Counted from the first letter of the stretch, positions 19,263-62,871 are shown. The stretch: DNA of 64,000 bases from Bugula neritina (GCA_964035545.1 OZ037772.1:9417150-9481149), one strand, 5' to 3'. A program made the numbers and translations. Notes: generated by a model not told the origin, from the sequence alone.

Positions 19263-21715
19263 TTAGTGAGGTTTATTACTTGTGTGTCCTCTCTTAAGAT
19301 GGTTAGCAAAATATTTCTTCTTTGTTGTTCTGTAGTCACATGTATTGCAAACATGTACATTTTCATCAGAGTGAGTTGCTATATGTCCTTCCATAAAGCC
19401 TCCGTTTGGTGTCTCATATCTACACAGAGGACATTTCCATTTTCCTGTTCTATTGTCTGTAGGCCCAAAATAAAAGAGTAAATTGCTTATATAACAGTTG
19501 CAACATCATATCACATTGTTTAAGAACTGCTTATAGTAAATTATATTTAATACACACACACACCCACACGCACACGCACGCGCACGCGTACACACACACG
19601 CGCACACATTCATGGACAAGCAAGAACACTGTAAAAACACCCAACACTAAAAAATAGTAGGGTCTATCATCGGAAATAGTGTTGTAACTACAAAATTACT
19701 TATACTCATTATTAATTTTATATAACTTTTATCACAACTAAATCTAGTCAGTCAACAATAAATTAGCAACTAACCAATAGTTGGGGTCAATGCAGAGACA
19801 TTGCTGGCTCTAGCCAGCGAGAATGATGGAACGGAAAAAATCTCATCTGTCTGTTGATTGGATGTTGGATTTTGCTGAATAGAAGATGGAGTCTGTGAAT
19901 GAGTTGGTTGCGTGAAGAGTCTAGGTAAAATAGAATGACTCTGATTTACTGCAGAAATATCTTCACTGCTATAGAACAGAAAACTATCTGTTTGTCTGTC
20001 TGTCTGAAAGTTTGGTAGACAAATATTTTGGTCATAAGTTGGTAGATTAAATGTCTGTAGACTTGGAGTTGGTTGTACGAAAAGTTTAGGCAAAGTAGAG
20101 TGGCTCTGAAGAACTGCAGAAGTATATTTACTCTCAGAAAACTGGACATTCTCTGCTTCTGCATTTGCCTGTAAATTTGGCAGTAAGATGTTTACGTCTT
20201 GAGTTGGTAAACTGTTTGTCAGTAAACTTGGTAAATTATAGTTTTGGTCTATGCTTGATAGATTTGATTGAGATGGTACCATGAAAATCTCGTATAAATC
20301 AAAGTCGCTTAAATTTACTAAAACAACATTGTTTCTCTCAGCATCTTGAAGGTTTTGATTTAAAGTGTCTGTCTGCAAGTTTAATGTTTCCGTATTTGGG
20401 CTAAAGACTGGCACAGTCTCAAGTGTTTGCTCTACAAAGGTGTCAGACAAAGTGAGATCACCTCCTTGTGCTGCAGGATTGCTACCAATGTCCTCACATT
20501 GAATATCTTCAGTTGTCGCACTGGTTTCTGGATCTGATGACTGAAGATTCCTTTCCCAAGTTGATGAATGAAACTCAGGTAAAGTAAATTGACTCTCATA
20601 CACCACTGCAGCACTTTCTCTATCAAGAACATGTATATCTTCTACTTCTTTGCTAAATGGTTCAGATGACTGGATTTCTTGGTAACCAGATGGCAGCTGG
20701 AAAGTGTTCTGTGTTATCACCATGTCTGCTGGAGAATCTGTTCTTTCTGGACTGTTTAAATATTGCTCTTTTAAAACTCTCACAGCTTCTGCAGTTTCTA
20801 CAAAAGAAATAAACATCCCTTTGCAACTGATACTTTTTTATAGAATGTGCATGCAGTTTTTGCACTTGTCACAAAGTTTTTAACAAACATTTCAATTTTA
20901 ATTTGTTTCTATCAATACAGATTTCAGCAACATATTATACACTGTCTTTTTATTGTCTGAAAAAATAATATTTAGTACTCTTAAACTTGCTCAAACCTTA
21001 AGTTGACATATAAATTTAGAAACATTTGAAACTTTACTTAGCAACTTTGCTACATATTAAAAAGGTAATACACTCAACAAAATTTTTTAACCCATCAAGT
21101 GTCCTAAACTACAAAGTGAACGGATAAAGGTGCACACAGATATAAGCAGTATTGATATTTTGGTAACAAATGGTCGACTGAACTACCCTAGGGAGCGTAT
21201 AAGACAACTCTGACCAGCACTGGCTAGGTTTGGGGGTGGTGGAGTGCCCTCCAATGTCAAATGTTCTTTTTTGTCCACTAAACACATTTCCCTCTAGCAA
21301 TTATACACCAGTGCATATTAATTTATTTCAAATTACTAACCAGCATCAGCTGTCACACTTTTTGAGCTGGTGTTCAGGTAAACATTTCCTTGATCTTCAT
21401 TAGAATCATGTAATGCCTGCCATAAATCTTCTATATCTAAAATGTAGATTTTGTAACTTTTAAAAACATTTTTAGCTTCTCTTATCAAAAAGTGCAGATT
21501 GTCCTGCAGATAAAATGAACTACATAAACTAATCAACTCAAATTTCTAAAGCTGGTAAATATTATGAAAAAAACAATTTATTTCCTATGCAATATAGACA
21601 TGTGCCATACTTGATCTGCATTTCAACCTTTAATACAGTAAAATATATGCACCAAATAGATTTAGGAATTTACTGAAATACATTCTCTATACGTACTTGA
21701 CATATCATCTGCCAT
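19263..21715 (-). CDS. ZF array unit 1: disordered S/T/Q-rich protein with two C2H2 fingers
   Basis: MADDMS micro-exon 21715-21697; exon ~21437-21341; large exon ~20797-19774; finger exon DNRTGKWKCPLCRYETPNGGFMEGHIATH...CNTCDYRTTKKKYFANHLKRGH...KPH*. Phase-1 introns. Confidence 0.85.
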
Positions 21716-23184: not shown

Positions 23185-24634
23185 TTAATCTATGCCATGA
23201 ATTCTTTGAGCATGTCTAGTAAAACGCTTTCTTGTTTCTGCTCTGTAGTCACATATATTGCAAACATAAATAGTTTTATAGGAGTGAGTTGCTATATGAT
23301 CATTCATGGTTTGTTTCTGATTTATCTCATAACTACAATGAGGGCATTTCCACTTCTCGGTTCTCAAATCTGTAAGCCCAAAGCAAGAGAGATACTGGCA
23401 GTATAGTTTATATATAGAGTGCAAAAGCAGAATTTATTGTTTCAAAGCTGTTTATATTAATTTACATTCACACACATGCACAGACACTCAGACACAAAGT
23501 GAGAGAGCCAGAGAGGCAGAGAGAGAAAGAGGGAAAAAAGAAAGAGAGAGAAACACACTCTTGAATAGACAAACATGCACAGAGTTTAAACACTCAAAAC
23601 TATTGAAAAATTAAGATGTGTAACTATGGAAAATGCTTTACAAGCACAAAATTGGTTATACTAATAGCAAATTGTATCCTACATTGAATGCAACCTATGT
23701 AGTCAAGTAAGAAATAATTGATAATTACTTACAATAATCTAGAGAAGAGTCAGCGTCAATAATAACTTCAGACCTTGAGGTTGATGGAGTGGAGTGAATC
23801 TCATCTATCTGTTGATTGGATGTTAGATTTTGCTGAGTACAAGATGGAGTCTGTGAATAAGTTATTGGTGTAAAAAGTCTAGACGAAGTAGAGTGGCTTT
23901 GATTCACTGCAGAAGTATTTTCACTGTCAAAAAGCTGAACACTTTCTGCTTTTGTGTTTTGTTGTATATTAGATGAATGAACATTTTGGTTATAAGTTGG
24001 TAAGTTGTATGTCTGTAGATATGGTAGGGGATAGCTTTGGTCTATAACTGATGAATTCAATTCATATGGTGGAAATTGAAAGTTCTCATTCAACTCTTGT
24101 GTTTGTGGATTTAGTGGCTGCTCATTTTGGCCACATACTAGTGAGGTTCCAAAGATTTGATTGACAGAGGGTTCAGTCAATCGGCCTCCATGTACCGCAC
24201 AATTGCTAATGATGTCAACACGTTGCATATCTTGATTTCTTGTACTGGTCTGTTGATCTGAGGACAAAATACTCTGTTCATAAATTCGAGAATGAAACTC
24301 GGGTGAAGTGAAGCGCTGGAATTGAGACACAGTGGCATCAATTTCTTCGCCAAGAGATTGATATCTCTCTCTTGCACATCCTTCATTTAAAATGCCTACA
24401 GTAACGTGTAAGAACACTTTTTGGCTCTTTTTTAAAATATAAAATCTACTGGCAATTATACCTCTACATTATAAGTTAAAAAATGTAATCAATTCAATTA
24501 GCGAAACAGGGGGAAAAATAACCTTTACTACTTTATAGCACCAGAACTAAAAATTGGTAAAATATGCATCACATTATTCTAAGAATTTAGTAGAAGAAAG
24601 TCACTCTATACTTACTTGACATTCTATCTGCCAT
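23185..24634 (-). CDS. ZF array unit 2 (two C2H2 fingers)
   Basis: MADRMS micro-exon; a single fused middle exon ~24395-23732; finger exon WKCPHCSYEINQKQTMNDHIATH...CNICDYRAETRKRFTRHAQRIH. Confidence 0.85.
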
Positions 24635-25475: not shown

Positions 25476-27804
25476 TTAGTTAGGTTGATTTCCACCATGA
25501 CAGTTCATAGTATGTCTTGTCAGGCACCATCCTCTATTTGTTCTGTAGTCACATTTATCACAAACATGGATTTTTCTAGAAGAGTGAGACTTTATATGAC
25601 GATCCATGTAACTTATCTGCCTTACTTCATTGTTACAGTGAGGGCACTTCCATTTCTTATTTGTACTGTCTTCAAAATCAAAATCAGAAAAAGGCTTGCG
25701 GTAATTTATATAGAAGTTGCGAAATTTGCTAAGTTGTTCTATATAGACACATATGAAAAGCTAAAATTGCACAAGCACACACAAAGAAGTAGAATATGCA
25801 CCAAGGAAAACTTTTGAAGTGTAATTTGCCTTTTGATCTAAATAGTTGTTTTTAATTATTATAATAATTATATATATATATGCATTTTTATTGGCACTCT
25901 ACGGTCAGTGCGTATAGGAAGTTGATAACTTACTCTTACTCAAAGTTGAAGCTAAAGCAGAGAAATCAATTGGTAGACGCTGTGAAGTTGATGGAGTGGA
26001 GTGAATCTCATCTGTTTGTTGATTGGATGTTAGATTTTGCTGAGTATAAGATGAAGCCTGTGAATGAGTTACAGGTGTAGAAAATCTAGACAGAGTAGAG
26101 TGTATTTTGAGATTTGCTGTAGCATTATATTCACGGCCATAATATTGAACCTGCTCTGCTTTTGTGTCTTCCTGTAAACTTGGAATTGGGACATTTTGGT
26201 TTTGAGTTGATAAATATCCTGTCTGTAGGTTCGGTAAAGAACATTTGTGGTCTACGATTGGCAAATGCAATTCAGATGGTACCATAAAAATCTCAGGTAA
26301 GTTAGAGTCACTAGAGTTTACTAAAATAGGATTAATTTCCTTAGCAACTTGAAAATTTTTATTTAATGTGTCTGTCTGTAAATTCAATGTTTGATTGTTT
26401 GGGCTAGACACAGGTGCAGTCTCAAGTGTTTGCTCAACTGAAGTTTCAGGTAGCATAAAATTGCCTTCCTGTAGTGCACAACTGCTGATATTGTCAGTTC
26501 TTGTGCTGATCTGTAGATTTAATGACTGAATATTTTGTTCATAAACTGGTGAATGAAACTCGGGTGAAGTGAATTGACTCTCATACACCACAGCAGCACT
26601 TTCTCTATCACGAACATGTATATCTTCTACTTCTGTGCTTAAGGGTTCAGATGACTGAATTTCCTGGTAACCAGGTGGCAGCTGGAAAGTGTTCTGAGAC
26701 ATTAACATGTTTGTTAGAGAATGTGTTCTTTCTGGACTGTTTAAATATTGCTCTTTTGGAACTCTTACTGCTTCTGCAGTCTCTACAAACAAAATAAAGA
26801 CGCCTTCACAAATTATATATTTTGATACAACTCGGTTCAATTTTTGCAATTATAGTACCAAAGTTTCAACTTTACTTTATATCATCAATACAGATGAAAA
26901 CAACATATATGTGGTCTCTTCCGAGTCTCAAATCATTTATTTAAAAGCTCTAAACTTTTAAATTCTAGCATTTATAAACTGTCATGCAAACCTCAAACAA
27001 TGCAAAGCTTTATTCTCAGTGAGAATACAAATTATGAATTTTTAAATTTTGTTTTGAATTATTTAGCAAGCTGATAAATTCAATAAAATCTACCAACAAT
27101 CAGCTGTTCATTTTCAAAGATAAATATTTCAAACTATATTTACTATTCCTTATTGTTTTCATTACAAAGCTTAGATACATCTGGGCCTACTCTTTTAATG
27201 ACCTTTAAGTTATAGTAAAATAAAATAAAACTACACCATGCCAGAATGCAGAAAAAATTCTCTATATAATAATATAGTATTCTAATGTATATAGTTGTCC
27301 ATATAAGTCTATTCAGCACTACTAATTACCAGCATCACTCATTCTACTTCCTGGGTCGGTGCTCAGTTCGATGTTTCTGAGATCTTCATTCGAATGATAT
27401 TTCTTTCTTGGCCAATCTTCATCTGAAATGTAAATTATAGTGTTCAGGGATATTTTTTGGTTTTCTTTATCAAAAATTATGAAAAAAATTGCCCCCAATC
27501 AAAATCAAACCCGAAGCCTCTGGCTTGCAAGCAAGTGTGCTAACAATTGCACCACCGGGACCACTGGGTAAACTTATCACTACAAATTATTAGCTATAGT
27601 GACTTAATTAATAGAACTGAACTAATAATGGTTCCAATTTCCAAGACCTGTTAAATGTTATCACATAAAATAACTTTTGTCATTGTGCACCATGAAAGCT
27701 GAAGTCAAACATTTCCTACAGCAAAATTGTATTTGTTACAAATTACTATAATAAGAATTTACTAAGACAGAGTCACTCTACTTACTTGACTTTTTATCTG
27801 CCAT
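25476..27804 (-). CDS. ZF array unit 3 (two C2H2 fingers)
   Basis: MADKKS micro-exon; exon ~27422-27330; large exon ~26782-25935; finger exon WKCPHCNNEVRQISYMDRHIKSH...CDKCDYRTNRGWCLTRHTMNCH...QPN*. Confidence 0.85.
27487..27570 (-). mobile_element. tRNA-Ala-derived SINE-like repeat, family 2 (intronic)
   Basis: Similar to 5530-5615 (cctctggcttgcaagca...ctaacaattgc). Confidence 0.6.
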
Positions 27805-28886: not shown

Positions 28887-28890
<4 letters not shown>

Positions 28891-28972: not shown

Positions 28973-28978
<6 letters not shown>

Positions 28979-29010
28979 GAAATAAAATGAGATTTGATTA
29001 ATATAATGGC

Positions 29011-29063
29011 ATTTATTACTAGTAGTTTCGTACACAAGAACGATGTGCACTCGTCAGATAAAT
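29011..29063 (-). ncRNA. Minimal hammerhead ribozyme in the PLE 3' repeat
   Basis: ATTTAT-CTGACGA-GTGCACA(tcgttct)TGTGTAC-GAAAC-tacta-GTA^-ATAAAT. Stem I is 6 bp, stem II is 7 bp, both core boxes are present, and a short palindrome (TACTAGTA) replaces a full stem III. Confidence 0.85.
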
Positions 29064-31012: not shown

Positions 31013-31111
31013 GCCATTATATTAATCAAATCTCATTTTATTTCTTTTAATGTTTATGCTCTAGATTTATTTCTATAGAGCACTCTAGTAACGTTTTATA
31101 AACACTCATTT

Positions 31112-31626
<515 letters not shown>

Positions 31627-32303: not shown

Positions 32304-34446
32304 TCAATTATAAGGTTCATTTAATCCAGAATGATATCTCCGAACGTGAGTAACCATTTTATCTCTCTGAGCTGATCTGTAGTCACATGTGTCGCAAATA
32401 TGTACATTCTCAAAGGAATGAGATTCTATATGACGATCCATGTAATCACTTCGGGCTACCTCATATCTACAGTGAGGGCATTTCCATTTCCCGGTTACAG
32501 GGTCTTCAAATTCAAAGCAAGAATAGAAAATGCAGTAATTTATATAGAAGTTGCAAAAGTTGCTACATTGTTGCAATGTTGTTTATGCATGAGAAGTTAT
32601 GTTCACCTAATATGCAAACAAAAATCAAAGGATAACCTTTTGAGTATTTAAGTTGCCTTTTGATCCTATAGTATAATTATTATTAATATTATATATCGAT
32701 GCTCAGTTACAATCTATGGTCAATATATAATAAGTTGATAACTTACTCTTATTTATAGTTGAAGGTAAAGCAGAGACATTGGTTGGTGGTCGCTGTAAAG
32801 TTGATGAGGTGGAGAGAATCTTATCTGTCTGTTGGTTGAATGGTAAGTTCTGAGGAATTTGTGAATGAATTGGCTGTGTGAAGAGTCCAGACAGATTAGA
32901 GTGGCTCTGATTTACTGCAGAGGTATATTGACTCCCATAATACTGGGAATTATGTGCTTGTCTGTCTGTCTGAAAGTTTGGTGGATGAGCATTCTGGGTA
33001 TAAGTTGGTAGATTGAATATCTGTTGATTTGGTGTAAGATAGCTCTGGTTAATGTTTAGTAAATTAGATTGAAATGGTACCATAAATATATCAGGTACAA
33101 ACAAATGAGTAAAGTTTCTTGAAGAAGCATTGCCCCTTACAACAGATTGAAGGTTTTCATACGATGAAAGTGTCTGTTGATCAAATGCTTGATTATTCTG
33201 GCTAAAGTTGGGTGAACTTCTAAAAGTCTGTTCAACAGAGGTTGCAGACGGCGTAGTAACATGGCTTCTACGTCTTGGAGAGTTGCCAACAAGTTGCATA
33301 TTTCTGCCTCTTCTGCTCCTTTGTGAAATTTGTGACTGAATATGTTCTTCATAGGTCGGTAAGTGTGAACCAGGTAAAGGAAAATAATATTCAGACCATG
33401 TAGTAGTATTGTCTCTATCAGAACCTTGAATATTTACTCTTTCTGTGTTTCTTGGTTGAGATGCTGAGTACATCTCCCGGTAACCAGATGCCATCGACAG
33501 AATTAATGGTTGATCGGTCCCTCCTAGACCCTCTCCGTTCTGTTCTATATTTAGCAATAATTCAGTATCTCCTGTAAAGTAAATAAACCTGTCCTCAAAA
33601 TTTATAACTTTTCTCATAATACAACTTGCTTAATATTTACACAATCATCACAAAAATTGCTTCAAATTCACTTTAGTATTGCCAATACAAAGGCAAACAG
33701 CATAATGTAGCTTTCTCATTTTATTGGTAGTTGAAATTGGGTGAATTGCAATTTTTTAACTTTTTTCAAGCTTGAGAAGGTGTTGTTATAAAACACTCTC
33801 TGTATGTTAAGCTGAAGTTAAAATTCAAAATCATTTTTTGAATTTGATTTAGAAATATTTGAAAAGCTGATATGCATGCATTCACCAAACTGACTAACCA
33901 ATCCACTTTCTACTCTGCAGAGATAATTCATTTAAACTGAGCTGCAATTAGGATTTATTTTCATTACAATTGGTTACAATAAAAGTTATTCATAAGCTGT
34001 ACTCAAGTAGCATTGGTGTAGATTAGGTAAAACTCTCCCAAAGCAAACTGCTGAAAAGATCCTGTAAGATTGAGTATTGAAGCAAAAAGATGTAGACGCA
34101 AATGACAGTTTATTTAAAAGTACTAACCCGCATCACTCATAAGACTTGCTAGATCAGCATTCTGTTCAGAATCTCCGAGTTCATCATTAGAATCCTGCTC
34201 TTGTCTTATGCATCCTTCATCTGAAAATATAACTATGATGTCTTAGAATACAGTGTAGATTGTTAGAAATTAACTAATTAACTCAAATTTCAAACTCTAG
34301 TAAACTTTATGATCGACATAATCAACTTTCACCAATGTGCCATAGAAGGGCAGAAGTTCAACACTTACTATTACATTACCACAGTATTTCAAAATAATAT
34401 TATTAATAAAATACAGTCTCTACTTACTTGACATACCATCTGCCAT
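32304..34446 (-). CDS. ZF array unit 4 (two C2H2 fingers; PLILS variant motif)
   Basis: MADGMS micro-exon; exon ~34220-34129; large exon ~33571-32745; finger exon WKCPHCRYEVARSDYMDRHIESH...CDTCDYRSAQRDKMVTHVRRYH. Confidence 0.85.
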
Positions 34447-35989: not shown

Positions 35990-38900
35990 TTAGGAAGGTT
36001 TATTTCCAGCATCATGAGTTTTCATATGTCTCTTAAAGCTCTGATTGCTTTGGGTTCTGTAGTCACACACGCTGCAAACATGTACATTTTCTTGATCGTG
36101 AGTTTCTATATGGCAAACTATGTTCTTATCGATAACTGTCTTAAATCTACAGTAGGGGCATTCATATTTGTCGATTCCAGTATCTTTAAAATAAAAACAA
36201 GAATATTATTTGCAATAATTAAATTACATTACGTTCTTGTAAAGCAGTTTATGAGAAGTTATATTTACATATGTGTACACGAAAAGAAACAGATTGGATC
36301 AGGAAAAGCTCATCCAGTTAAATTTGACTTTTACTCTATATATAATTTAAATTAAGTAATAATAGAGTAAAATAAAATACTAAATAAATATTAGGATAGC
36401 TATTATAGGTATCCTAATATTTAATACTATTATATTTATGTGTAATTACAATATAATTATGATAAGTAGATAATAAGTTGATAACTTACTATAATAAGTT
36501 GAAGGTAAAGCAGAGACATCGGATGGTAGATGCTGTGAGGTTGATGGAGTAGAGTGAGTCTCATTGGTCTGTTGATTGAATGGTGAGTTTTGTAGAATCT
36601 GTGAATGAATTGGCTGTGTGAAGAGTTCAGGCAGATTAGAGTGGCTCTGATTTACTGCAGATGTAGATTGACTCCCATAATACAGGAAATTTTGTGCTTG
36701 TCTATCTGTCTGAAAGTTTGGTGGATGAGCATTCTGGGTATAAGTTGGTAGATTGAATGTCTGTAGACTTTGAAAGTAATAGTTCTGGAGCATGTTCAGT
36801 AAATTCAATTGAAATGGTACCATAAATATATCAGGTGAAAACAAATGAGTCAAGTTTCTTGAAGAAGCATTGTCCCTTACAACAGATTGAAGGTTTTCAT
36901 TTGATGAAAGTGTCTGTTGATCTAATACTTGATTAATCTGGCTAAAGTTGGGTGAACTTCTAACATCCTGTTCCACAGAGGTTGCAGAAGGCGTAGTAAA
37001 TTGGCTTCTATGTCTTGGAGAGTTGCCAACAAGTTGCATATTTCCGGCTCTTCTGCTCGTTTGTGGAGTTCGTGACTGAATATGTTCCTCATAGGTCGGT
37101 AAGTGTGAACCATGTAAGAGAAAATGATATTCAGACCATGTAGAAGTATTTTCTCTATCAGAACCTTGCATATTTACTCTTTCTGTGTTTCTCGGTTGAG
37201 ATGACGAAGAAATCTCCTGGGAACCAGATGGTAGCTGGGATCTGTTTGTTGCTATTGACAGATCTAAAGGAAGTTCAGTGTTTTCTACACTCTCCACATT
37301 TTTTCGTCCTGGATTTAGCGCTATAATGTCTTTACTTTCTAAAAAGAAGAGAACAAAAAATGTCGTTCAAGCTTATAAATATACAAACATCAAAACATTT
37401 GTCCCAATCTTCAAATATTAAGATTTTTGCAGACGTCAAAAGATGGTGTGGAAAACCCAGCTCTTCTAATTTTTAGGTTAAAGGTCAAATTCAAGACGTT
37501 TTTGACTTTCCTTGAACTATTTGAAAATCTAAGACATTCCCAAAAAAACTTACTTATAACCCGTCAACAGTCTACTTTGTAAAGATCATTAACTTAAATC
37601 TCTGCACCAATAGTTTACTTTTATTATAAATTTTAGAAAAAAGTACTTTACAAGCTGTACTCAAGTAGTAATAAAATGTGGTAATAAAAGTTTAGTGCTT
37701 TCTACATTCTTCTCATTCTGTTGTTCTATATATAATTACCATCACTATGAGAACCTTGGATGTTTACTCTTTCTGTGTGCTTTGGTTTAGATGCTGAGGA
37801 CATCTCCTGGTAACAGGATGCTATTGATAGATCTAATGGTTGTTTGGCAATTTCTAGATTATCTCTGTTTTCTAGTTGTGGATTCAGTACTTCTGCTGCA
37901 AACGTTTCTATAAAAACCATAAACGCTTCTTTAAGTTTTAAAATTGCTTTACTAAAATGCGTATGCACTGTTAGTATTATTACCATCAATATCAGAACCT
38001 TGGATGTTTACTCTTTCTGTGTTTCTTGGTTGAGATGCTGAGTACATCTCCCGGTAACCAGATGCCATCGATAGATCTAATGGTTGATCGGTCCCTACTA
38101 TAAAGCTCTCCTCATTCTGTTCTATATTTAGCAATGGTTCAGTGTTTCCTGTAAAGTAAATAAATCTGTCCTTGAAACTTATAGTACTACTCACATAAGA
38201 TTTTCACAATCATCACAAAAATTGCTTCAACTTCACTGTGGTGTTGCCAATACAGGAGCAAACAGCATAATGCAGCTTTCTCAGTTTATAGGTAGTTAAA
38301 ATTATATGTATTGCAATTTTCTAACTTTGTTCAAGCATGTAAAGGTGTTGTTATAAAACTAGCTGTATTTTAAGCTGAAGTTAAAATTCAATATCATTTG
38401 GAATTTGATTTGGAAATATTTGAAAAGCTGATATACATGCATTCACTAAACTGACTAACCAATCCACTTTCTACTCTGCAGAGATTATTAAGTTAAACTG
38501 AGCCGCAATTAGAATTTATTTTCATTCCAAGGTTTTAATAAAAGTTATTCATAAACTTTACTCAAGTTACATTCATGTAGATTGGGTAAAATTCTCCCAA
38601 AGCAAACTGCTGAAAAGATCCTGTAAGAATGAGTGTTCAAGCAAAAAACTGTAGATGCAAATGACAGTGTATTTAAAGTACTAACCGGCATCACTTCCAA
38701 GACTTGCTGAATCAGCATTCCGTTCAGAATCGCTGAGTTCATCATTAGAATCCTGCTCTTGCCTTATGCATCCTTCATCTGAAAATATAACTCTGATGTC
38801 TTAGAATACAGTGTAGATTGTTAGAAATAAACTAATTAACTCAAATTACAAATTCTAGTAAAATTTATGACATAATCAACTTTCACCAATGTGCCATAGA

Positions 38901-38994
38901 AAGGCAGAAGTTCAACACTTACTATTATATTATCACACTGTTTTAAGATATTCATAAAATTCAGTCTCTACTTACTTGACATATCATCTGCCAT
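35990..38994 (-). CDS. ZF array unit 5 (three PLDLS motifs, two C2H2 fingers)
   Basis: MADDMS micro-exon; exons ~38778-38686, ~38148-37984, ~37907-37740, ~37338-36489; finger exon YECPYCRFKTVIDKNIVCHIETH...CSVCDYRTQSNQSFKRHMKTH...KPS*. Confidence 0.87.
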
Positions 38995-40527
38995 TTTAAG
39001 TACAACTCAACACTAAAAGTAAAGTAAAACTTCAAAGACTTGCTGTAACACAATTTTATTTGCACTTTGAATACAATATTGTAGATTCTCCTTAGCCCTT
39101 TATATATAGTTCAGGATATAACTAATATCTGTCAAATGAAGAAAGCTATTGTAGAAGCATTATATAGCTAGCTTTCATTAAATCATTTTACTTGTACATG
39201 TGCTATGAAACTGGCAGTTTTTTCACCTCAATTGTTAAAGCTTTTGTGATACTTAACTAAAGTCAAATGATAGTGTGTGTTATCTTCTCATGCATATATG
39301 CTATGAAACTATGAGAAGTGATTTAATTAACTTATCAAATTTTTCATAACATTAAACTTAAATCAAATTATCAGTTTATTACTTTGCAAAGATCGTGAAA
39401 ATTTATCTTATTTAGAACAAGTCTCTATAAAAAATGATCCTGCCTATTAAATTAGGTTAAGTCTCATCTTGGTGTTGTTTACAGTAATTATTCCCAAAGA
39501 CAAGTTGAGTAGAAAACTCTCATCCAGAAAATAGAATTAATTTACATTTTCTGTTCTTGAAAACTTTACAATCTGTATTTTCTCCAGGCAGAGAATAATC
39601 TCTCTGTTTCAAATGCAGAAATATTCTGTCTGTAGACAAATTGAAGGTTTTTAGTTTCAGTGTTTTTTAGCTAATTTGTTGATTCAGCTGTGTTACTGGA
39701 ACTTCTGCTCTGAACATTATACTCTATAGTTTTGTTGATTTTTTTGACAGTCTATGTGTGAAAGTTAACTATTTGCTAAATTATTTTAACTTGGTAAAGG
39801 AAATTTTCCATCAGGGGTTCTCACATGCATTGTGAATATGATTATACTCAAGTGAGCATTAGACTAGTTTGTTTCATTTGCATGTCAGATACCTATCAGT
39901 GCATCTGTGATAATAAAAAAACAGAATATGCCATTTAGTTATTGTTTTTGTATGAGTAGTAGGATAAATTGTTTTATTAATATTGCAAGTTCTTCAAAAA
40001 AGCATAGATTCTCTAGAATTAATATTGTATGATGGATAATTTGCTAATGACAACTATTAGACGGCCTAAAAACACAAACTTCTTCAACATTTAGAGACTA
40101 GAAAACATCAAACAGTTAAGAATGTTTATAAAAATGAATGTGACTGTAAGCAATAGTTTACGTTAGATCTTTTTTTTCTAACATCACTTTATTTTTGAAA
40201 AAATAATAAAATTATTAACTGCAAAAATTTACTTCTAAAATGGAAATAAAAATGCCTGATTTAGAAAGGCTGAAAACATTTGAAGTCGCATTTCATTTAT
40301 GAACATGGTACAGCTGTTTTTCTAGAGACCAGAAACATGTGAACTATCTTCAGAATAAAAATTATGGCAAGAATGTAAACTATAAAACAAGATATGGACA
40401 ATTAATTTCTGGTATATGATAACCTAATTAGATTTATTAAGTTCAGCTGCTTTTTATTTTACTGATGCATTTGAGAATGATTATTCAGATGGTAGTTATG
40501 TGAATGTTTCTTTCCACATTAATGACA

Positions 40528-43500
40528 TTAGGAAGGTTTATTTCCAGCATCATGAGTTTTCATATGTCTCTTAAAGCTACGATTGCTTTGGGTTCTGTAG
40601 TCACACACGCTGCAAACATGTACATTTTCTTGATCGTGAGTTTCTATATGGCAAACTATGTTCTTATCGATAACTGTCTTAAATCTACAGTAGGGGCATT
40701 CGTATTTGTCGATTCCAGTATCTTTAAAATAAAAACAAGAATATTATTTGCAATAAGTTACATTACGTTCTTGTAAAGCAGTTTATGAGAAGTTATATTT
40801 ACATATGTGTACACGAAAAGAAACAGATTGGATCAGGAAAAGCTCATCCAGTTAAATTTGACTTTTACTCTATATATAATTTAAATTAAGTAATAATAGA
40901 GTAAAATAAAATACTAAATAAATATTAAGATAGCTATTATAGGTATCCTAATATTTAATACTATTATATTTATGTGTAATTACAATATAATTATGATAAG
41001 TAGATAATAAGTTGATAACTTACTATAATAAGTTGAAGGTAAAGTAGAGACATCGGATGGTAGATGCTGTGAGGTTGATGGAGTAGAGTGAGTCTCATTG
41101 GTCTGTTGATTGAATGGTGAGTTTTGTAGAATCTGTGGATGAATTGGCTGTGTGAAGAGTTCGGGCAGATTAGAGTGGCTCTGATTTACTGCAGATGTAG
41201 ATTGACTTCCATAATACAGGAAATTATGTGCTTGTCTGTCTGTCTGAAAGTTTGGTAGATGAGCATTATGGGTATAAGTTGGTAGATTGAGTGTCTGTTG
41301 ACTTTGAAAGGAATAGTTCTGGAGCATGTTTAGTAAATTCAATTGAAATGGTACCATAAATATATCAGGTGAAAACAAATGAGTAAAGTTTCTTGAAGAA
41401 GCATTGTCCCTTATAGCAGATTGAAGGTTTTCATTTGATGAAAGTGTCTGTTGATCTAATACTTGATTAATCTGGCTCAAGTTGGGTGAACCTCTAACAC
41501 TCTGTTCTACAGAGGCTGCAGAGGACGTAGTAAAATGGCTTCTATGTCTTGGAGAGTTGCCAACAAGTTGCATATTTCCGGCTCTTTGTGACTCATTGTG
41601 TTCTTCATATGTTGGTAAGTGGGAACCATGTAAGAGAAAATAATATTCAGACCATGTAGTGGTATTGTCTCTATGAGAGCCTTGAATATTTACTCTTTCT
41701 GTGTTTCTTGGTTGAGATGCTGATGACGAAGGATAAATCTCCTGGGAACCAGATGGTCGCTGGGATCTGTTTGTTGTTGTTGACAGATCTAAAGGAAGTT
41801 CGGTGTTTTCTACACTCTCCTCATTCTGTTGTTCCTGATTATGTACTATAATGTCTTCATTCTCTAACAAAAAAACAAAAAATGTCGTTCAAGCTTATAG
41901 ATATACCAACACCAAAATATTAGTCTTAATCTTCAAATATTGAGAGTTTTGCAGGCGTCAAATGATGGTGTGCAAAATCCAGCTCTTCAAATTAGGTTAA
42001 AGTTCAAATTTAGAATATTTTGGACTTTTCCCGAACTGTTTGAAAAACTAAGATATTCCCCAAAAAGGTTCTAACCAGCAGACAGTCTACTTTGTACAGA
42101 TCATTATCTTGAACCTCTGCACCAATAGTTTACTTTTATTATAAATTTTAGAAAAAAGTACTTTACAAGCTGTACTCAAGTAGTATTAAAATGTGGTAAT
42201 GAAAGTTTGGTGCTTTCTACACTCTTCTCATTCTGTTGTTCTATACACTTGGTACTACTGCTGCAGTTTCAATAAAAGGCATAAATATTGCTTTAAATTT
42301 TATAATTGCTATTTTATAATTTGTATGCACTGTTATTTAGTATTATTACCATCACTATCAGAACCTTGAGTGTTTACTCTTTCTGTGTGTTTTGGTTTAG
42401 AGTACATCTCCTGATAACCAGATGCCATCGACAGATCTAATGGTTGTTCGGCATTTTCTAGATCCTCCTTGTTTTGTTGTTGTGGATTCAGTACTACTGC
42501 TGCAGTTTCTATAAAAATTATAGACGTTTCTTTAAATTTTAAAATTGCTATACTAAAATGTGTATGCACTGTTAGTATTATTACCATCACAATCAGAACC
42601 TTGGATGTTTACTCTTTCTGTGTTTCTTGGTTGAGATGCTGAGTACATCTCCCGGTAACCAGATGTCATCGACAGATCTAATGGTTGATCGGTCTCTACT
42701 ATAAAGCTCTCCTCATTCTGTTCTATATTTAGCCATGGTTCAGTGTTTCCTGTAAAGTAAATAAATCTGTCCTTGAAACTTATAATACTACTCCCATAAT
42801 ATTTTCACAATCATCACAAAAATTGCTTCAACTTCACTGTGGTGTTGCCAATACAGGAGCAAACAGCATAATGCAGCTTTCTCAGTTTATAGGTAGTTAA
42901 AATTAAATGTATTGCAATTTTTTACTTTCGTTCAGGCATGAAAAGGTGTTGTTATAAAACACTCTCTGTATTTTAAGCTGAAGTTAAAATTCAATATCAT
43001 TTGGAATTTGATTTGGAAATATTTGAAAAGCCGATATACATGCATTCACTAAACTGACTAACCAATCCACTTTCTACTCGGCAAAAATAATTAATTTAAA
43101 CTGAGCCGCAATTTTTTCATTACAAGGTTACAATAAAAATTATTCAGAAACTGTACTCAAGTTGCATTCATTTAGAATGGGTGAGACTTTCCCAAAGCAA
43201 ACTGTTGAAAAGATCCTGTAAGATTGAGCATTGAAGCAAAAAGATGTAGATGCAAATGACAGTGTATTTAAAAGTACTAACCCGCATCACTTCTAAGACT
43301 TGCTATATCAGCAGTCTGTTCAGAGTCTCTGAGTTCATCATTAGAATCCTGCTCTTGTCTTATGCATCCTTCATCTGAAAATATAACTATGATGTCTTAG
43401 AATACAGTGTAGATTGTTGGAAATAAACTAATGAACTCAAATTACAAACTCTAGTAAACTTTATGACATAAGCAGCCTTCACCAATGTGCCATACAAGGG

Positions 43501-43590
43501 CAGAAGTTCAACACTTACTACTACATTATCACACTGTTTTAAAGTATTAATAAAATTCAGTCTCTACTTACTTGACATATCATCTGCCAT
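40528..43590 (-). CDS. ZF array unit 6 (three PLDLS motifs, two C2H2 fingers)
   Basis: Same exon plan as unit 5. PLDLS at 42670-42684, 42429-42443 and 41781-41795. Finger exon differs from unit 5 by a single amino acid. Confidence 0.87.
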
Positions 43591-45132
43591 CTTAAGTACA
43601 ACTCAACACTAAAAGTAAAGTAAAACTGCAAAGACTTGCTGTAACACAATTTTATCTGCACTTTGAATACAATATTGTAGATTCTCCTTAGCCCTTTATA
43701 TATAGTTTAAGATATAACTAATATCTGTCAAACAAAGAAAGCTATTGCAGAAGCACTATATAGCTAGCTTTCATTAAACCATTTACTCATACATACATGT
43801 GCTATGAAACTGGCAGTTTTTCATCTCAATTGTTAAAGCTTTTGTGATACTTTACTAAAATCAAATGATAGCGTGTGTTATCCTCTCATGCATATGCTAT
43901 GAAACTATAAGAAGTGTTTTAATTATCTTATCAAAAGTTTCATAACATTAAACTTAAATAAAATTATCAGTTTATTACTTTGCAAAGACCGTGAAATTTT
44001 ATCTTATTTATAGAACAAGTCTCTATAAAAAATAATCCTGCCTATTAAATTAAGTTCAGGCTCAGCTTAGTGTTGTTTACAATAATTCCCAAAGTCAAAT
44101 TGAGTAGAAACCTCTCATCCAGAAAATAGATCTAATTTACATTTTCTGTTCTTGAAAACTTTACAATCGGTATTTTCTCCAGGCAGAGAATAACGTCTCT
44201 GTTTCAAATGCAGAAATATTCTGTCTGTAGACAAATTGAAGGTTTTTAGTTTCAGTGTTTTTTAGCTAATTTGTTGATTCAGCTGTGTTACTGGAACTTC
44301 TGCTCTGAACATTATACTCTATAGTTTTGTTGATTTTTCTGACAGTCCATGTGTGAAAGTTAACTATTTGCTAAATTATTTTAACATGGTAAAGGAAATT
44401 TTCCATCAGGGATTCTCACATGCACCGTGACTATGATTATACTCAAGTGAGCATTAGACTAGTTTGTTTCATTTGGATTTTAGATACTGACCATCAGTGC
44501 ATCTGTGAAAATAAAAAAAAACAGAACAAGCCATTTAGTTACTGTTTTTGTACGAGTAGTAGGATAAATTGATTTATTATTGTTGCAACTTCAAAAAGCA
44601 TATAATCTCTAAAACTATTAGTGTATGATGGATAATTTGCTAATGACAACTCGGACTGTCTAAAAACACAAACTTCTTCAAAATTTACCGACTAGAAAAA
44701 ATCCAACAGTTGTGGATGTCTGAAAACATGATATGACTATAAGCAATAGTTTACATGCATGCATTGAAATTGTTTTCTATCATTACTTCAAATTTCTAAA
44801 AAGAAATGATAAAACACATTAACTGCTTAGGAATTAAATTATAAAACGGCAGTAAAAATGTTTGATTTAGAAAGGCCAAAACATTTGAAGTCAAATTTCA
44901 TTTATGAGCATTGTACAACTGTTTTTCAAGAGGCCAGAAACATGTGAACTAGCTTTAGAATAAAAATTATGGCAAGAATGTAAACTATAAAACAAAATAT
45001 GCACAATTAATTTCTGGTATACGACAACTTGATTAAATTTACTAAGTACAGTTGCTTTTCATTTAACTGATGCATTTAAAAATGATTATTCAGATGGTAC
45101 TTATGTGAATATTTCTCTCCACATTATTGACA

Positions 45133-47976
45133 TTAGGAAGGTTTATTTCCAGTATCATGAGTTTTCATATGTCTCTCAAAGTGATTTTTGTTCTTTGTTC
45201 TGTAGTCACACACGCTGCAAACATATACATTTGTTTTGTCGTGAGTTTCTATATGGCAAACTATGTTCCTATCGGTACCTGTCTTGAATCTACAGTAGGG
45301 GCATTCGTATTTCCCAGTTTCAGGACCTTCAAAATAAAAACAAGAATATTATTTACAATAAGTTATATTATGTTCTTGTAAAACTGTTTATGAGAAGTTA
45401 TATATTCACATATGTACACAAAAAGAAACATATTGGATCTGGAAAAAGCTCTTTGAGCTCAATTTACTCTTATTATAGATATTATTCAAATTGAATAATA
45501 ATTAAATTAAATTAAATATTAAGACATCTATAATTATCCTAATATTTAATTATACTATTATATGTATGTGTAGTTACAATATAATTATGATAATTAAGTA
45601 CATAATAAGAATTGATAACTTACTATAATAAGTTAAAGCTAAAGCAGATACATCGGATGGTTGACGCTGTGAAGTTGATGGAGTGGAGTGAATCTCATCT
45701 GTCTGTTGATTGAATGGTAAGTTCTGAGAAATTTGTGAATGAATTGGCTGTGTGAAAAGTTCAGGAAGATTAGAGTGGCTCTGGTTTACTGCAGAGGTAG
45801 ATTGACTCCCATAATACTGGAAATTTTGTGCTTGTCTGTCTGTCTGAAAGTTTGGTGGATGAGCATTCTGGGTATAAGTTGGTAGAGTGGATGTCTGTTG
45901 ACTTTGAAAGGAATAGTTCTGGAGCATGTTCAGTAAATTCAATTGAAATGGTACCATAAATATATCAGGTGAAAACAAATGAGTCAAGTTTCTTGAAAAA
46001 GCATTGTCCCTTACAACAGATTGAAGGTTTTCATTTGATGAAAGTGTCTGTTGATCTAATACTTGATTAATCTGGCTAAAGTTGGGTGAACTTCTAACAT
46101 CCTGTTCAACAGAGGCTGCAGAAGGCGTAGTAAATTGGCTTCTATGTCTTGGAGAATTGCCAACAAGTTGCATATTTCCGGCTCTTCTGCTCGTTTGTGG
46201 AGTTTGTAACTCAATATGTTCCTCATAGGTTGGTAAGTGTGAACCATGTAAGAGAAAATAATATTCAGACCATGTAGTAGTATTGTTTCTATCAGAACCT
46301 TGCATATTTACTCTTTCTGTGTTTCTCGGTTGAGATGACGAAGAAATCTCCTGGGAACCAGATGGTAGCTGGGATCTGTTTGTTGCTATTGACAGATCTA
46401 AAGGAAGTTCAGTGTTTTCTACACTCTCCACATTTTTTCGTCCTGGATTTAGCGCTATAATGTCTTTACTTTCTAAAAAGAAGAGAACAAAAAATGTCGT
46501 TCAAGCTTATAAATATACAAACATCAAACCATTTGTCCCAATCTTCAAATATTAAGAGTTTTGCAGACGTCAAAAGATGGTGTGGAAAACCCAGCTCTTC
46601 AAATTTTTAGGTTAAAGTGAAAATTCAAGATGTTTTTGACTTTCCTTGAACTATTTGAAAATCTAAGACATTCCTAAAAAAACTTACTGACCCGTCAACA
46701 GTCTACTTATTTGTAAAGATCATTAACTTAATTAAACCTCTGCACCTATAGTTTACTTTTATTATAAATTTTAAAAAAAAGTACTTTACAAGCTGTACTC
46801 AAGTAGTATTAAAATGTGGTAATGAAAGTTTCGTGCTTCCTACACTCTTCTCATTCTGTTTTTCTATATACTTGGTATTACTTCTGCAGTTTCAATAAAA
46901 GGCGTAAATATTGCTTTGAATTTTATAATTGCTATCCTATAATTTTTATGAACTGTTAGTATTATTACCATCACTATCAGAACCTTGGATGTTTACTCTT
47001 TCTGTGTTTCTTGGTTGAGAAGCTGAGTACATCTCCTGGTAACCAGATGCCATCGACAGATCTAATGGTTGATCGGTTCCTCCTATAAAGCTCTCCTCGT
47101 TCTGTTTTATATTTAGCAATGATTCAGTGTTTCCTGTAAAGTAAATAAATATGTTCTTAAAACTTATTATACTACTTGCATAATATTTTCACAATCATCA
47201 CAAAACTTGCTTCAACTTCACTTTGGTATTACCCATACAGAGGCAAACAGCATAATATGTAGCTTTCTCAGTTTATTGGTAGTTGAAATTGGGTGGATTG
47301 CAATTTTTTAACTTTGTTCAAGCATGAAAAGGTGTTGTTATAAAACACTCTCTGTATGTTAAGCTGAAGTTAAAATTCAAAATTATTTGGAACTTGATTT
47401 AGAAATATTTGAAAAGCTAATATACATGCATTCAACAAACTGACTAACCAATCCACTTTCTACTCTGCAGAGATAATTCATTTAAACTGAGGCGCAATTT
47501 TTTCATTACAAGGTTACAATAAAAATTATTCAGAAACTGTACTCAAGTTGCATTCATGTAGATTGGGTAAAATTCTCCCAAAGCAAACTGCTGAAAAAAT
47601 CCTGTAAGATTGAGTATTAAAGCAAAAAAATGTAGATGCAAATGACAGTGTATTTAAAAGTACTGACCCTCATCACTCATAAGACTTGCTAGATCAGCAT
47701 TCTGTTCAGAATCTCTGAGTTCATCATTAGAATCCTGCTCTTGTCTTATGCATCCTTCATCTGAAAATATAACTCTGATGTCTTAGAATACAGTGTAGGT
47801 TGTTAGAAATAAACTAATGAACTCAAATTACAAACTCTAGTAAACTTTATGACATAAGCAGCCTTCACCAATGTGCCATACAAGGGCAGAAGTTCAACAC
47901 TTACTACTACATTATCACACTGTTTTAAAGTATTAATAAAATACAGTCTCTACTTACTTGACATATCATCTGCCAT
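45133..47976 (-). CDS. ZF array unit 7 (two PLDLS motifs, two C2H2 fingers)
   Basis: PLDLS at 47054-47068 and 46390-46404; finger exon YECPYCRFKTGTDRNIVCHIETH...CSVCDYRTKNKNHFERHMKTH...KPS*. Confidence 0.87.
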
Positions 47977-48968: not shown

Positions 48969-50812
48969 TTAAGGCTTTCTAACTTTCCGTGATTTAATGC
49001 TCCATTGATGCATCTTGTAATGCATGTTCAAAGTGTTCTTATTTACATATTCTCTACCACAGTGGATGCATTTGTAAATCTTTATTCCTTCGTGACTTTC
49101 CCTGAAATGACTGTAAAGACTGGACCTTTCTTGTACTCTGTAGTCGCATAAATGACAAACATGTACATTTATCAATGAATGAGTTGCTGTATGAGAGTTG
49201 ATATGGCTTTCATCTGATGACTCATATCTACACTGCGGGCATCTCCATGTCCTAGTTGTGTGATCTGTAAAAATGAAATACATGGAAACAAACTATAATC
49301 AAGAAGAGAAGGGCAAGAAAATTGTTACTCAATTTATATATGTATTATACATTGATTGCATACTATGCATGATATTTTATTTTGAGTGTATGCATGTTTG
49401 TGTGTATATTTTGTCATCTATGATATTAGGAAATTACTCTACCATAACTTGGAGTAGAAGACAAATCAATGGTGGCTCCAGACAGCGAAGTTGATGGAGT
49501 GGAGTGAATCTCATCTGTCTGTTGATTGGATGTTAGGTTTCGTGGAGTAGAAGATGGAATCTGTAAACGAGTTGGTTGTTTGAAGATTTTAGGCAGAGTA
49601 GAGTGATTCTGATTTACTGTAGAGGTACTCTGTCTATAGACATCCTGGATGGTTTCAGTTCCTCTGTCTGTTTCTTGACTTGTTGCTTGAGTGGAATGAC
49701 TACCAGATGCTAACTGTTGATCTAGCTGTGCTGTTGTAAGCACTGTGTTATAAATTTCCTCTTTAAGATATTTTTCCTCACCTATAGTTTTTTCTAATGA
49801 AAAACATCTAATTTTAAATATTATCATTAAGTGGTGACAATACAATTATATGCACTGAATTATCCCAACTGCATACTAAAAAATTACTGAAACCCTGCAC
49901 CTTAACAAACAGGCTAAAACAGTTTTTCACATATATCTTTCCCAATGTCACCCAGTTGCTGCAATGGCTGTTTCAACTAGATGTTAAATTTTGAAAATTT
50001 CCTTTGATTTCTGTTTTAAAAGCTTTTTTAAAACATTGTTTATCATTAGAAAATTACTAAAAAGTTAACTATAGCTAATGGGTGTTAAAATCGTATCGAA
50101 AAATCATGTATATCACTCTAAACCATAAAACAGTGCTCAAGCAAGATAATATCAGTTAATTCAAGTTCACCAAAAAAGTGCAAACCTGTGTCAGTTGTCA
50201 CTTTGCCTGAGTCTTTATCTGAATCACCGTTCCTGAGATCTTGTGTGAAATCCTCAACTTCTTGCCGGGCTCTTCCTTCATCTGAAAAGTAGAAATTGAC
50301 ATCTCTAAAAGTGCTGTTTACTCTGTACAACAAAAGTTGAAAGTTATAATGAGAATTAATTGTGAAGTAATGCAAATATATTTAAAGAAAACCTTTGCCC
50401 CTCCATTGGGATTCTAACTCAAGACATGCAACTTGCAAACAGGCTATGGCACAACAAGGGTTGTGTACTTAATGAACTTTATAACAATACAAAAGCTTTT
50501 ATTTCAGATAAAAGTTGGCAATTGAGTTTTGTCACTAAAACTTTTAACGTCAATTTTTTTTATAAATTTCCTTTGTTTTAAAGTGGGTTTTTATAATACA
50601 AAGTTTTATGAAAATTGTTTTTACAAATAAAATGCCTGTAGCATTAAAATAGTTTCATAAAGATAAATCAAGTTTACATAAAATACATTACTGATACGCC
50701 AACCACCAGAAGTAACTTTATTTATGGTTATGTTTTAGATAATTTATCACATTATATTCTAAGAATTTACTAGAATACAGCCACTCTACTTACTTGACAT
50801 TCCATCTGCCAT
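48969..50812 (-). CDS. ZF array unit 8 (three intact C2H2 fingers, short linker region)
   Basis: MADGMS micro-exon; exons ~50281-50186 and ~49794-49442; finger exon ~49265-48969 with an intact third finger YKCIHCGREYVNKNTLNMHYKMH. Confidence 0.85.
50394..50460 (-). mobile_element. Degenerate tRNA-Ala-derived SINE-like repeat, family 2
   Basis: ttgcccctccattgggattctaact...acttgcaaacagg matches the 5530 copy. Confidence 0.5.
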
Positions 50813-52867: not shown

Positions 52868-58258
<5,391 letters not shown>

Positions 58259-59623: not shown

Positions 59624-61131
59624 TTAGTAAGGTTTATATCTAATGTTACAAATTTTAGTATGGGTATTATAATGGGTCTTATTTAGTGTTCTGTAGTCAC
59701 ATATGCGGCAGACATGTACATTTTCATAAGAGTGAGTAACCATGTGTGTCTTGAGGAATTTTACAATTGGTGTCTCGAATCTACACTGAGGGCATTTAAA
59801 TTTGAAGGTTGTACGATCTGTAAACACATAATAATAAAAAAATTGAAACAGTTGATGTAGAAATTGCAAAATCATAATTCATTGTTTGAAAGCTGCTTAA
59901 AATAATTTGAATTTGCCCACCCACCTACCTATCCCACCCCCACACACACACACACAAAGATATGCACGCAGATCCACACTTTTGCTTCACCAACCATACA
60001 CAAAATACAAACACTCAAACTGATGCTATAGATATGATGAATCAGAGAGAAGTCTTTGTAAGTACAAAAATTATAGGCTTTAATAATCAGCATACTATTT
60101 TAACTGTAATTTTTTAGTCAAGAACAAATTATTAACTGACCATAATATTGAGTAAAACCAGTGTATCTGATGACTTCAGACCCTGAAGATGATGGAGTAG
60201 AATGAGTCGCAACTGCTTGTCCATTAGAAGTTTGATCCTGCCTAGTAGAAGATGAGGTCATCGAATGAGTCAGTTCTGTAGAAAATCCAGGCTTAGTATA
60301 AGAGTGGCTTTGATTTACTGTAGAAGTAGTTTTAATGTCAGAAAACTGGATATTTTCTGCCTCTGTGTTTTCTTGTATATTTCCTAAATAGATATCTTGG
60401 CCATGACTTAGTAAATTGTCTGTCTGCATATGTGGTAAGGAATGACTTTCATCTATCAATGGCAAATTTGATTGATATGATGGAAATTGAAAGTTTTCAT
60501 TCAACTCGCACGTTTGTGGATTTAGTGGCTGCTCATTTTGGTCAGATACTGGCGATGCTCTGAGAACTTCCTTTAAAGAAGTTTCAGTCAATTTGTCTCC
60601 ATGTGTTGCTGAACCGCTAGCAATTTCAGAACGTTGCATACCTCGAGTTCTTGCGCTGGTCTGTGAATCTGATGACTGCATATTCTGTTCATAGTTTGGT
60701 GAATGTAATTCGGGTGAAATAAAACAACTCTGTTCAGACACTTCGGCATCAATGTCTTCATCAAGAATATCATCTATGCCCTCTAGTTCTGTACTTGTTG
60801 GATGAATTGTTGCCTGGGATTCTTCAAAATCATATGGTAGATGCAGAGTATCTGGTGCCATTGATGTATCTGTTGGGAGTTGTGTGCTTTCTGCACTCTC
60901 TTCGTATTCCTCCTCTAGAGTTAGCACTGGTTCTACAGGTTTTAAAAAAACATCTAATGTGTCTCCAACTCATAACTTAGTAATTGCTGCAAGAAAATCA
61001 ACTTTTACCATTGTACAGTGTACACCATTAGAACTAAACTGTATCGCTTACTACGGCAAAATATGTACCACTTTGTTATAAGAATTTACTAGAATACAAT
61101 CACTCTACTTACTTGGCATATCATCTGCCAT
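59624..61131 (-). CDS. ZF array unit 10 (C2H2 + C2HC fingers)
   Basis: MADDMP micro-exon; large exon ~60932-60141; finger exon FKCPQCRFETPIVKFLKTHMVTH...CRICDYRTLNKTHYNTHTKIC...KPY*. Confidence 0.85.
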
Positions 61132-62462: not shown

Positions 62463-62871
62463 TTAGTAAGGTTTATATCTAGCGTTACAACTTTTAGTGT
62501 GGGTATCATAATCGCACTTCTTTTTTGTTCTGTAGTCACATATGCGGCAGACATGTACATTTTCACAAGAGTGAGTAGCTATGTGTGTCTTGATGAAACG
62601 TTTATTTGGTGTTTCAAATCTACACTGAAGGCATCTAAATTTGTAGGTTGTATCATCTGTAAACACGAAATAAAAAGAAAATTAAAACAGTTGATCTAGA
62701 AATTGCAAAATTATAATTCAGTGTAAGCTGTTTATGATAATTTAAATTTACCCACCCACCCACTCACCCACCCACCCACTCACCCACTCACCCACCCACC
62801 CACCCACTCACCCACCCACTCACCCACCCACCCACCCACTCACCCACTCACCCACCCACCCACTCACCCAA

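Follow-up and report, generated by a model that had tools for sequence, protein, structure and literature searches.

The stretch of DNA analysed here, hereafter the window, comprises 64,000 nucleotides of AT-rich animal DNA (about 32% GC) and contains a tandem array of genes for C2H2 zinc finger proteins. A six-frame scan of the window yielded 12 pairs of C2H2 fingers between 19.2 and 62.7 kb (45 kb), all on the minus strand, and each pair sits in a short terminal exon that closes with a stop codon. The first-pass annotation of the window had listed these 12 pairs together with the strings of their finger-2 helices, and its sole slip in this respect was the order of two units, those at 52892 and 53759, which had been swapped. 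We focus on units 5 to 7 of the array and on the finger residues by which the encoded proteins would read DNA. At these positions, amino acid replacements have accumulated faster than synonymous changes, and the surrounding zinc-binding scaffold has hardly changed at all.

Unit 5 is a six-exon gene with canonical splice sites (GT-AG introns), and all of its introns are in phase 1 when read on the minus strand, which is also the coding strand of all other features described below. Exon 1 has a length of 19 nucleotides with the ATG at 38994, encodes MADDMS and lies together with the acidic exon 2 (38686-38778) in a block spanning 38686..38994. Exons 3 (37984-38148) and 4 (37740-37907) are both phase 1-1 symmetric and carry one PLDLS motif each. 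Exon 5 (36490..37338) is a long, Q/S-rich exon of 849 nucleotides without a Pfam domain that contains the third PLDLS motif (37256-37270), and the terminal exon (35990..36183) encodes the two C2H2 fingers and ends with a TAA stop codon. The first five exons of unit 6 are located at 43572-43590, 43282-43374, 42585-42749, 42350-42508 and 41024-41863, and its terminal exon (40528..40721) encodes two fingers as in unit 5. In unit 7, the second of the small PLDLS exons is missing, such that four exons (47958-47976, 47668-47760, 46969-47133 and 45624-46472) precede the terminal exon (45133..45326), the helices of which read GTDRNIVC and KNKNHFER. When the finger exon is included, the open reading frames (ORFs) of units 5, 6 and 7 are intact and encode 495, 489 and 439 amino acids, respectively. 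A start exon with an ATG is repeated ahead of ten units of the window. Since every unit is furnished with an ATG exon and a complete ORF of its own, the gene models describe an array of independent tandem genes, each complete, and not a set of alternative 3' exons; a locus of the lola or mod(mdg4) type, in which finger-encoding 3' exons are used alternatively, was rejected on the same grounds. A search against Pfam did not match any family to exons 2 to 5, that is, no KRAB, FiNZ, ZAD, SCAN or BTB domain was found there.

The PLDLS sequence is the classical motif for binding of CtBP (PMC2749851). It is present in three copies each in units 5 and 6, in two copies in unit 7 and in one copy in the last unit of the array, and in all four units this PxDLS-type motif lies in a disordered region. 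On the basis of the motif, proteins of the unit 5-7 type probably recruit the CtBP corepressor, and CtBP-dependent repression may thus be envisaged for part of the family only.

Judged by their sequence, the fingers themselves belong to the classical C2H2 type and resemble those of CTCF and REST in their 'CxxCxY' pattern. The ligand spacing C-x2-C-x12-H-x3-4-H/C fits all 24 fingers of the 12 window pairs as well as all copies from Bugula neritina, whose database loci (L001, L002, L008, etc.) were compared with the window as those of a second, related species; some of the second fingers end in cysteine as the last ligand. The terminal exon of unit 5 reaches 41.9 bits with the Pfam family zf-H2C2_5 (cutoff 27), units 1 and 12 fall just under this cutoff (26.6 and 24.2), and the best relatives of known structure are fingers of CTCF (E=3e-11). 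An AlphaFold model built on 22 copies exhibits the beta-beta-alpha fold twice, with a mean predicted local distance difference test score (pLDDT) of 78, strands at residues 6-7/14-15 and 34-35/42-43 and helices at residues 18-29 and 46-58. The best Foldseek matches were DNA-bound C2H2 tandems, with weak E-values (about 3e-3) for this very small domain. Helix positions were assigned by taking the first zinc-binding histidine as +7, and since residues 18 and 46, at which the modelled helices begin, correspond to +1, this register holds. The linker between the fingers has the canonical length of seven residues and reads xxENVHV, with N, V and V being at least 90% conserved. Over the 22 copies, the cysteine and histidine ligands, Tyr41 and Arg42 are invariant and Asp40 is present in 21, in full agreement with the near-invariant scaffold that had been noticed at first reading, and every one of the 22 finger exons retains an open frame and the zinc ligands. 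Such strong conservation of the zinc scaffold argues that the fingers are functional. In the 12 window copies, the mean column entropy amounts to 2.48 bits in the helices, 1.33 bits at other non-scaffold positions and 0.40 bits in the scaffold (Mann-Whitney p=7e-5).

In canonical complexes of C2H2 fingers with DNA, the helix positions -1, +2, +3 and +6 read the bases. In unit 5, helix positions -1 to +6 are encoded at 36113-36133 for finger 1 and at 36029-36049 for finger 2. The eight codons for positions -1, +2, +3 and +6 of both fingers were set a priori as the contact partition, and the main data set consisted of ten distinct, gap-free copies of the subfamily to which units 5 to 7 belong (subfamily A, 63 codons), three of them from the window and seven from B. 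neritina. Pairwise synonymous divergence (dS) in this set ranges from 0.05 to 0.43 and is therefore unsaturated. Codon likelihoods were calculated with a purpose-written program, whose M0 fit (log-likelihood -825.2, dN/dS ratio omega 0.836, kappa 2.94) matches that of iqtree2 (log-likelihood -825.4). Omega at the contact codons is 2.9 under the Goldman-Yang (GY) model or 3.4 under the Muse-Gaut (MG) model; the scaffold codons have an omega of 0.05 and the remaining codons outside the scaffold one of 0.74-0.84. An omega of 1 at the contacts was rejected in likelihood-ratio tests (LRT 14.3 or 18.8, p 1e-4 to 1e-5), and so was equality between a wider helix set (-2 to +6, without +4) and the other non-scaffold codons (p=2e-5). 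Site models led to the same picture: M2a was preferred over M1a (LRT 11.4, p=0.003), with 17% of the sites at an omega of 3.6, and M8 was preferred over M8a (p=0.0004) as well as over M7 (p=0.0035), the latter comparison having been suggested by the first-pass annotation. Under M8, a posterior above 0.8 was reached by four helix positions (-1, +2 and +3 of finger 1 and +2 of finger 2) and by two further sites, codon 4 of the lead and codon 34 of the linker. Of the eight sites whose posterior exceeds 0.5 under M2a, five belong to the canonical contacts (hypergeometric p=4e-4). Nonsynonymous divergence (dN) of units 5 and 7 at the contact codons is 0.46, with the last intron (13.6% divergence) and the 3' flank (13.1%) serving as neutral yardstick. 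Pseudogenization as the cause of the high omega was ruled out by the 22 intact finger exons and the scaffold omega of 0.05.

The proposal that had been made from the sequence, diversifying selection at the contact sites of the helices, is thus supported, with an omega at the contacts that exceeds 1 and lies above that of the linker and other non-scaffold codons. The comparisons of individual units on which it had been built do not suffice for it. Exactly three nucleotides differ between the 189-nucleotide finger segments of units 5 and 6 (35993-36181 versus 40531-40719), just as described: one change is silent (TAT/TAC at 36164/40702, the TAC codon of unit 6 being located at 40700-40702), and the other two convert the glutamine codon CAG of unit 5 (36041-36043) into the arginine codon CGT of unit 6 (40579-40581) at position +2 of finger 2, an assignment with which the modelled helix starts agree. 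As evidence of selection, this difference is statistically empty. The finger exons of the two units diverge by 1.5%, their last introns by 0.7% and their 3' flanks by 2.4%, and the three changes are therefore what neutrality predicts. The changes in unit 7, VIDKN to GTDRN and QSNQSFK to KNKNHFE, are present in the helices, but change is not confined to them: compared with unit 5, the lead (TGID to PETG), the linker (QE to KT and H to Y) and the tail are also altered, and the finger exons differ in all by 27 nucleotides and 18 amino acids. Nor is unit 7 a recently altered copy. Its finger exon groups with its putative B. neritina ortholog L001:10070-10258 (94% bootstrap), which contains GTD in helix 1 and the nearly identical string KNKSHFER in helix 2, such that the helices of unit 7 must be regarded as old. 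Lastly, the signal in subfamily A is strongest in finger 1 (+2, +3 and -1) and not in finger 2.

The elevated omega at the contacts proved stable when the conditions of the analysis were varied. It was 3.2 on the nucleotide-tree topology and likewise 3.2 (p=4e-5) under a model allowing double-nucleotide changes, i.e., multi-nucleotide mutations, and it was 4.8 and 2.2 when the two finger halves were placed on separate trees. Only 0.03% of 20,000 random sets of eight non-scaffold codons reached the observed value, and when branch lengths were taken solely from the other 55 codons, none of 1000 neutral simulations attained the observed statistic. The set of 12 window copies that had originally been proposed for the test gave an omega of 4.6 at the contacts and all 22 copies gave 3.7; both trees contain long branches and were given less weight. 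Internal and terminal branches do not differ (omega 3.2 versus 3.5), and putative orthologs in the window and in B. neritina differ at three to four of the eight contact residues, so that change looks continuing rather than like a burst after duplication.

In our opinion, these results are probably best explained by a tandem array of bugulid genes for repressor-like proteins in which recurrent positive selection has favoured altered DNA-sequence preference. As modelled, each gene encodes a protein with a short acidic N-terminus, a long disordered Q/S-rich region and the finger pair at the C-terminus, to which one to three PLDLS motifs are added in the unit 5-7 type. New genes would arise by tandem duplication, and modules would be swapped between them through gene conversion or unequal crossing-over. 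The zinc-binding scaffold is under strong purifying selection, and at the eight contact positions replacements accrue at about threefold the rate of synonymous or intron change, on internal as well as terminal branches. Recurrent positive selection would, as the most likely mechanism, shift the DNA sequence that is preferred. 'Retargeting' of the paralogs and an 'arms race', as had been put forward in the first-pass annotation, may by analogy be apt descriptions of such a process. A more far-reaching version would make the array the bugulid counterpart of the system of KRAB zinc finger proteins (KRAB-ZFPs), that is, an expanding array of minimal repressors in which PLDLS, joined to two fingers only, hooks CtBP. 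A continuing conflict with selfish DNA such as transposable elements or satellites would then drive the contacts, and exon duplication as well as gene conversion would reshuffle both the finger modules and the number of motifs. We offer this version tentatively, as a possible but rather doubtful one.

A number of observations weigh against recurrent selection on the DNA-binding preference of repressor-like proteins. Among public sequencing runs, no RNA run holds DNA of the window, and expression and splicing are accordingly models. The PLDLS motif is intact only in units 5 to 7 and in the last unit. It reads PLILS in unit 4 and is degenerate in units 1 and 3 as well as in the two units that lie upstream of the finger exons at 59624 and 62463. 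In the other subfamilies, the position reads PADMV, LTNML, PTDMS or PTDTS (20070-20813, 25944-26789, 57282-58070 and 60184-60945), and in view of this degeneration the putative CtBP motif is not family-wide. The linker contains neither the glycine nor the proline of the canonical TGEKP sequence, and given such a linker and only two fingers, sequence-specific DNA binding is not assured. As for the statistics, the data consist of 63 codons only and stem from recombining copies, units 5 to 7 being recombinant mosaics (35650-37670 compared with units 6 and 7), and recombination can inflate site-model tests. When the contact codons were granted their own synonymous rate, omega was 3.2 with p=0.010 for the ten copies and 1.9 with p=0.013 for all 22. 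In nine independent sister pairs (Nei-Gojobori method), the ratio of nonsynonymous to synonymous differences per site (pN/pS) at the contacts was 1.26 and not significantly above 1 (Fisher p=0.12); in the same pairs, the excess at contacts over other codons was clear (odds ratio 2.4, p=3e-5).

The sister-pair value and the p≈0.01 of the most conservative model would also be in line with relaxed constraint alone, under which the helix surface is free to vary, replacements occur at or below the neutral rate and nothing is retargeted. Fast evolution is indeed not restricted to the contacts: all non-scaffold codons evolve fast (omega 0.7-1.0), and the long exon reaches pairwise omega values of 0.4-0.9, so that rapid change extends beyond the fingers. 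Neutrality at the contacts is, however, rejected by the LRTs, by permutation and by simulation, contact dN in the pair of units 5 and 7 is roughly threefold the divergence of intron and flank, and all 22 copies have kept their open frame and zinc ligands, all of which leads us to judge relaxed constraint as the sole cause unlikely. We hold it to be quite improbable that the finger pair is instead a protein-protein or RNA-binding module, comparable to the C-terminal dimerization fingers of Ikaros and Hunchback, in which selection diversifies the choice of partner. Points in favour of such a module are the restriction of the protein to two fingers, located at its very C-terminus, the linker, which is conserved but non-canonical, and some high-omega sites beyond the contacts (codon 4 of the lead, codon 14 of the beta-strand and codon 34 of the linker). 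Against these stand the best matches in sequence and fold, which are DNA-bound fingers (CTCF, BCL11A, Zif268 and ZFAT), the extreme position of the a priori contact set among random codon sets and the share of canonical contacts among the top sites.

A third alternative is an artefact among the near-identical tandem copies, be it from gene conversion, multi-nucleotide mutation, saturation or assembly error. The clear mosaics speak for it. From about 36700 to 35650, a tract that takes in the last part of the long exon, the adjoining last intron, the finger exon and the 3' flank, the identity of units 5 and 6 amounts to 98-99%, and upstream of this module their identity drops to 82-95%; in the comparison of units 5 and 7 the pattern is reversed, and over the rest of the long exon unit 5 shares 97% identity with unit 7 and 91% with unit 6. 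This pattern points to a breakpoint near 36700 left by gene conversion or unequal crossing-over. Furthermore, CAG/CGT is an adjacent double change, the trees of 12 and 22 copies contain the long branches mentioned above, and short-read depth at the finger exon of unit 5 is about twofold, as if units 5 and 6 had been collapsed. The only public run with DNA of the window is a short-read assembly, in which a single contig at 35849-36714 covers this finger exon; its depth is about 2-2.6 times that of single-copy pieces nearby. This contig combines the unit-6 state at 36164 with the CAG codon of unit 5, which suggests that units 5 and 6 are collapsed in the short-read data or that an allelic variant exists. 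The finger exon of unit 6 is uncovered in that assembly and its CGT state is thus known from the window assembly alone. Despite these findings, we rate an artefact as very improbable: allowing for multi-nucleotide mutation hardly alters omega (3.2), the synonymous-rate multiplier of the contact codons is 1.07 in the ten copies and gives no sign of imported diverged tracts, each finger half retains an omega above 1 on its own tree, dS within the subfamily is not saturated, and seven of the ten sequences originate from other, independent assemblies.

The remaining finger exons, with their finger-2 strings in brackets, are located at 19263..19456 (unit 1, TKKKYFAN), 23185..23369 (unit 2, ETRKRFTR), 25476..25669 (unit 3, NRGWCLTR), 32304..32503 (unit 4, AQRDKMVT), 48969..49264 (unit 8, QERSSLYS), 52868..53061 (RRKWDYER), 53543..53931 (KTKHSYED), 59624..59817 (LNKTHYNT) and 62463..62656 (KKKCDYDT). 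In unit 8, the usual pair is followed by a third, more canonical C2H2 finger (CIHCGREYVNKNTLNMHYKMH). The exon at 52868..53061 has CGYR in place of CDYR and a cysteine as last zinc ligand. Its second finger belongs to a subfamily in which finger 2 ends H-x3-C and not H-x3-H (52892-52954, 59648-59710 and 62487-62549 as well as L002), and this C2HC variant is kept in both species; the exon at 59624..59817 has its putative ortholog in B. neritina L002:8769-8957 (97% bootstrap). No stop codon follows the finger pair at 53759-53908, where the ORF runs on into sequence resembling the tail of a long exon, and as the next finger exon is found 870 bp downstream, a fusion product with four fingers is possible. 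In the last unit, fingers of the unit-10/11 type (62463-62656) are joined to a long exon like that of unit 5 (63165-63935), which includes PLDLS and is 82% identical to it at the protein level; on these similarities, the last unit is a module-swap chimera. Long microsatellite-like arrays with a spacing of 8-12 nucleotides recur between the units (28804-29053, 31028-31307, 53086-53437 and 62696-62963). Poly(A) signals downstream of the stop codons were uninformative, as they are too common in DNA with 32% GC.

Relatives of the long exon of unit 5 were retrieved exclusively as B. neritina proteins and Bugula-derived contigs (60-71% identity) in a word-based search of 5.8 billion protein clusters, and B. 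neritina carries matching tandem arrays of finger exons. On the strength of these relatives, the window was assigned to a bryozoan related to B. neritina. As far as sequence similarity can tell, the array is specific to the bugulid bryozoan lineage. An exhaustive profile search with the 22-copy finger alignment returned 55,538 matches led by giant poly-zinc-finger proteins and was uninformative on the range of the family, and a word search with the B. neritina protein did not find spliced, transcript-derived full-length relatives. The public B. neritina model EB796_015311 (387 amino acids, no Pfam domain, L001:3445-6081) ends before the finger exon, which lies about 270 nucleotides downstream (L001:6350-6538), and public annotation of B. 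neritina thus appears to omit the finger domain of the family. One B. neritina copy (L008:1385-2164) contains an in-frame stop codon in its long exon and is probably a pseudogene, in keeping with birth-and-death turnover; it was left out of the analysis.

Several well-studied families of zinc finger proteins (ZNFs) invite comparison. In the KRAB-ZFPs of tetrapods, which are encoded in tandem clusters and undergo birth-and-death turnover, positive selection is focused on positions -1, +2, +3 and +6 (PMC4592553). The bryozoan array resembles these clusters in its tandem, lineage-specific C2H2 genes, in selection focused on contact residues and in the combination of a putative repressor-recruiting part with fingers. 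It differs in that it lacks KRAB or any other folded effector domain, the putative effector being the short PLDLS motif, and in that its genes do not have long finger arrays but two fingers, with three in one unit and possibly four in one read-through product; the link to transposable elements is a feature of the KRAB side. Positive selection of the M2a type enriched at base-contacting residues has also been described for the FiNZ genes of cyprinid fish and for expanded metazoan ZNF families (Wells et al. 2023, PMC10547256), and across many animals the contact residues are the most variable positions of the finger (PMC10547256). The text of that study contains neither Bryozoa nor Bugula nor CtBP. 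The genes described here share the M2a-type selection and the hypervariable contacts and constitute a new lineage-specific family, whereas FiNZ genes have a dedicated N-terminal domain, many fingers and targeting of transposable elements that is backed by predicted binding sites. With CtBP-dependent PxDLS repressors such as ZEB, ZNF217 and ZNF366, the bryozoan proteins have in common PLDLS motifs in disordered regions beside C2H2 fingers (PMC2749851, PMC1693901), and some proteins of this type carry multiple PxDLS motifs, as do units 5 to 7. Those repressors are conserved single-copy regulators, unlike the tandem array with its fast-evolving fingers and variable motif number. The ZAD-ZNF genes of insects are likewise lineage-specific, clustered and fast-evolving C2H2 genes, some of them under positive selection, but they are equipped with the ZAD dimerization domain and more fingers than the bryozoan family. 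In these insect genes, selection reportedly does not act mainly on the contact residues.

Rapid evolution of contact residues in clustered ZNFs is therefore a known phenomenon, and what is new is the bryozoan family itself, its lack of a folded effector domain, its two fingers and its non-canonical linker. Positive selection on contact residues is the hallmark of genome-defence ZNF families, for which the documented cases come mainly from vertebrates, fish and insects. Should it hold true for a lophophorate, this regime would require neither a dedicated domain nor long finger arrays, and the array would offer a very small, tractable counterpart to the larger systems, in which single changes such as Q/R at position +2 in units 5 and 6 are testable for their effect on specificity.

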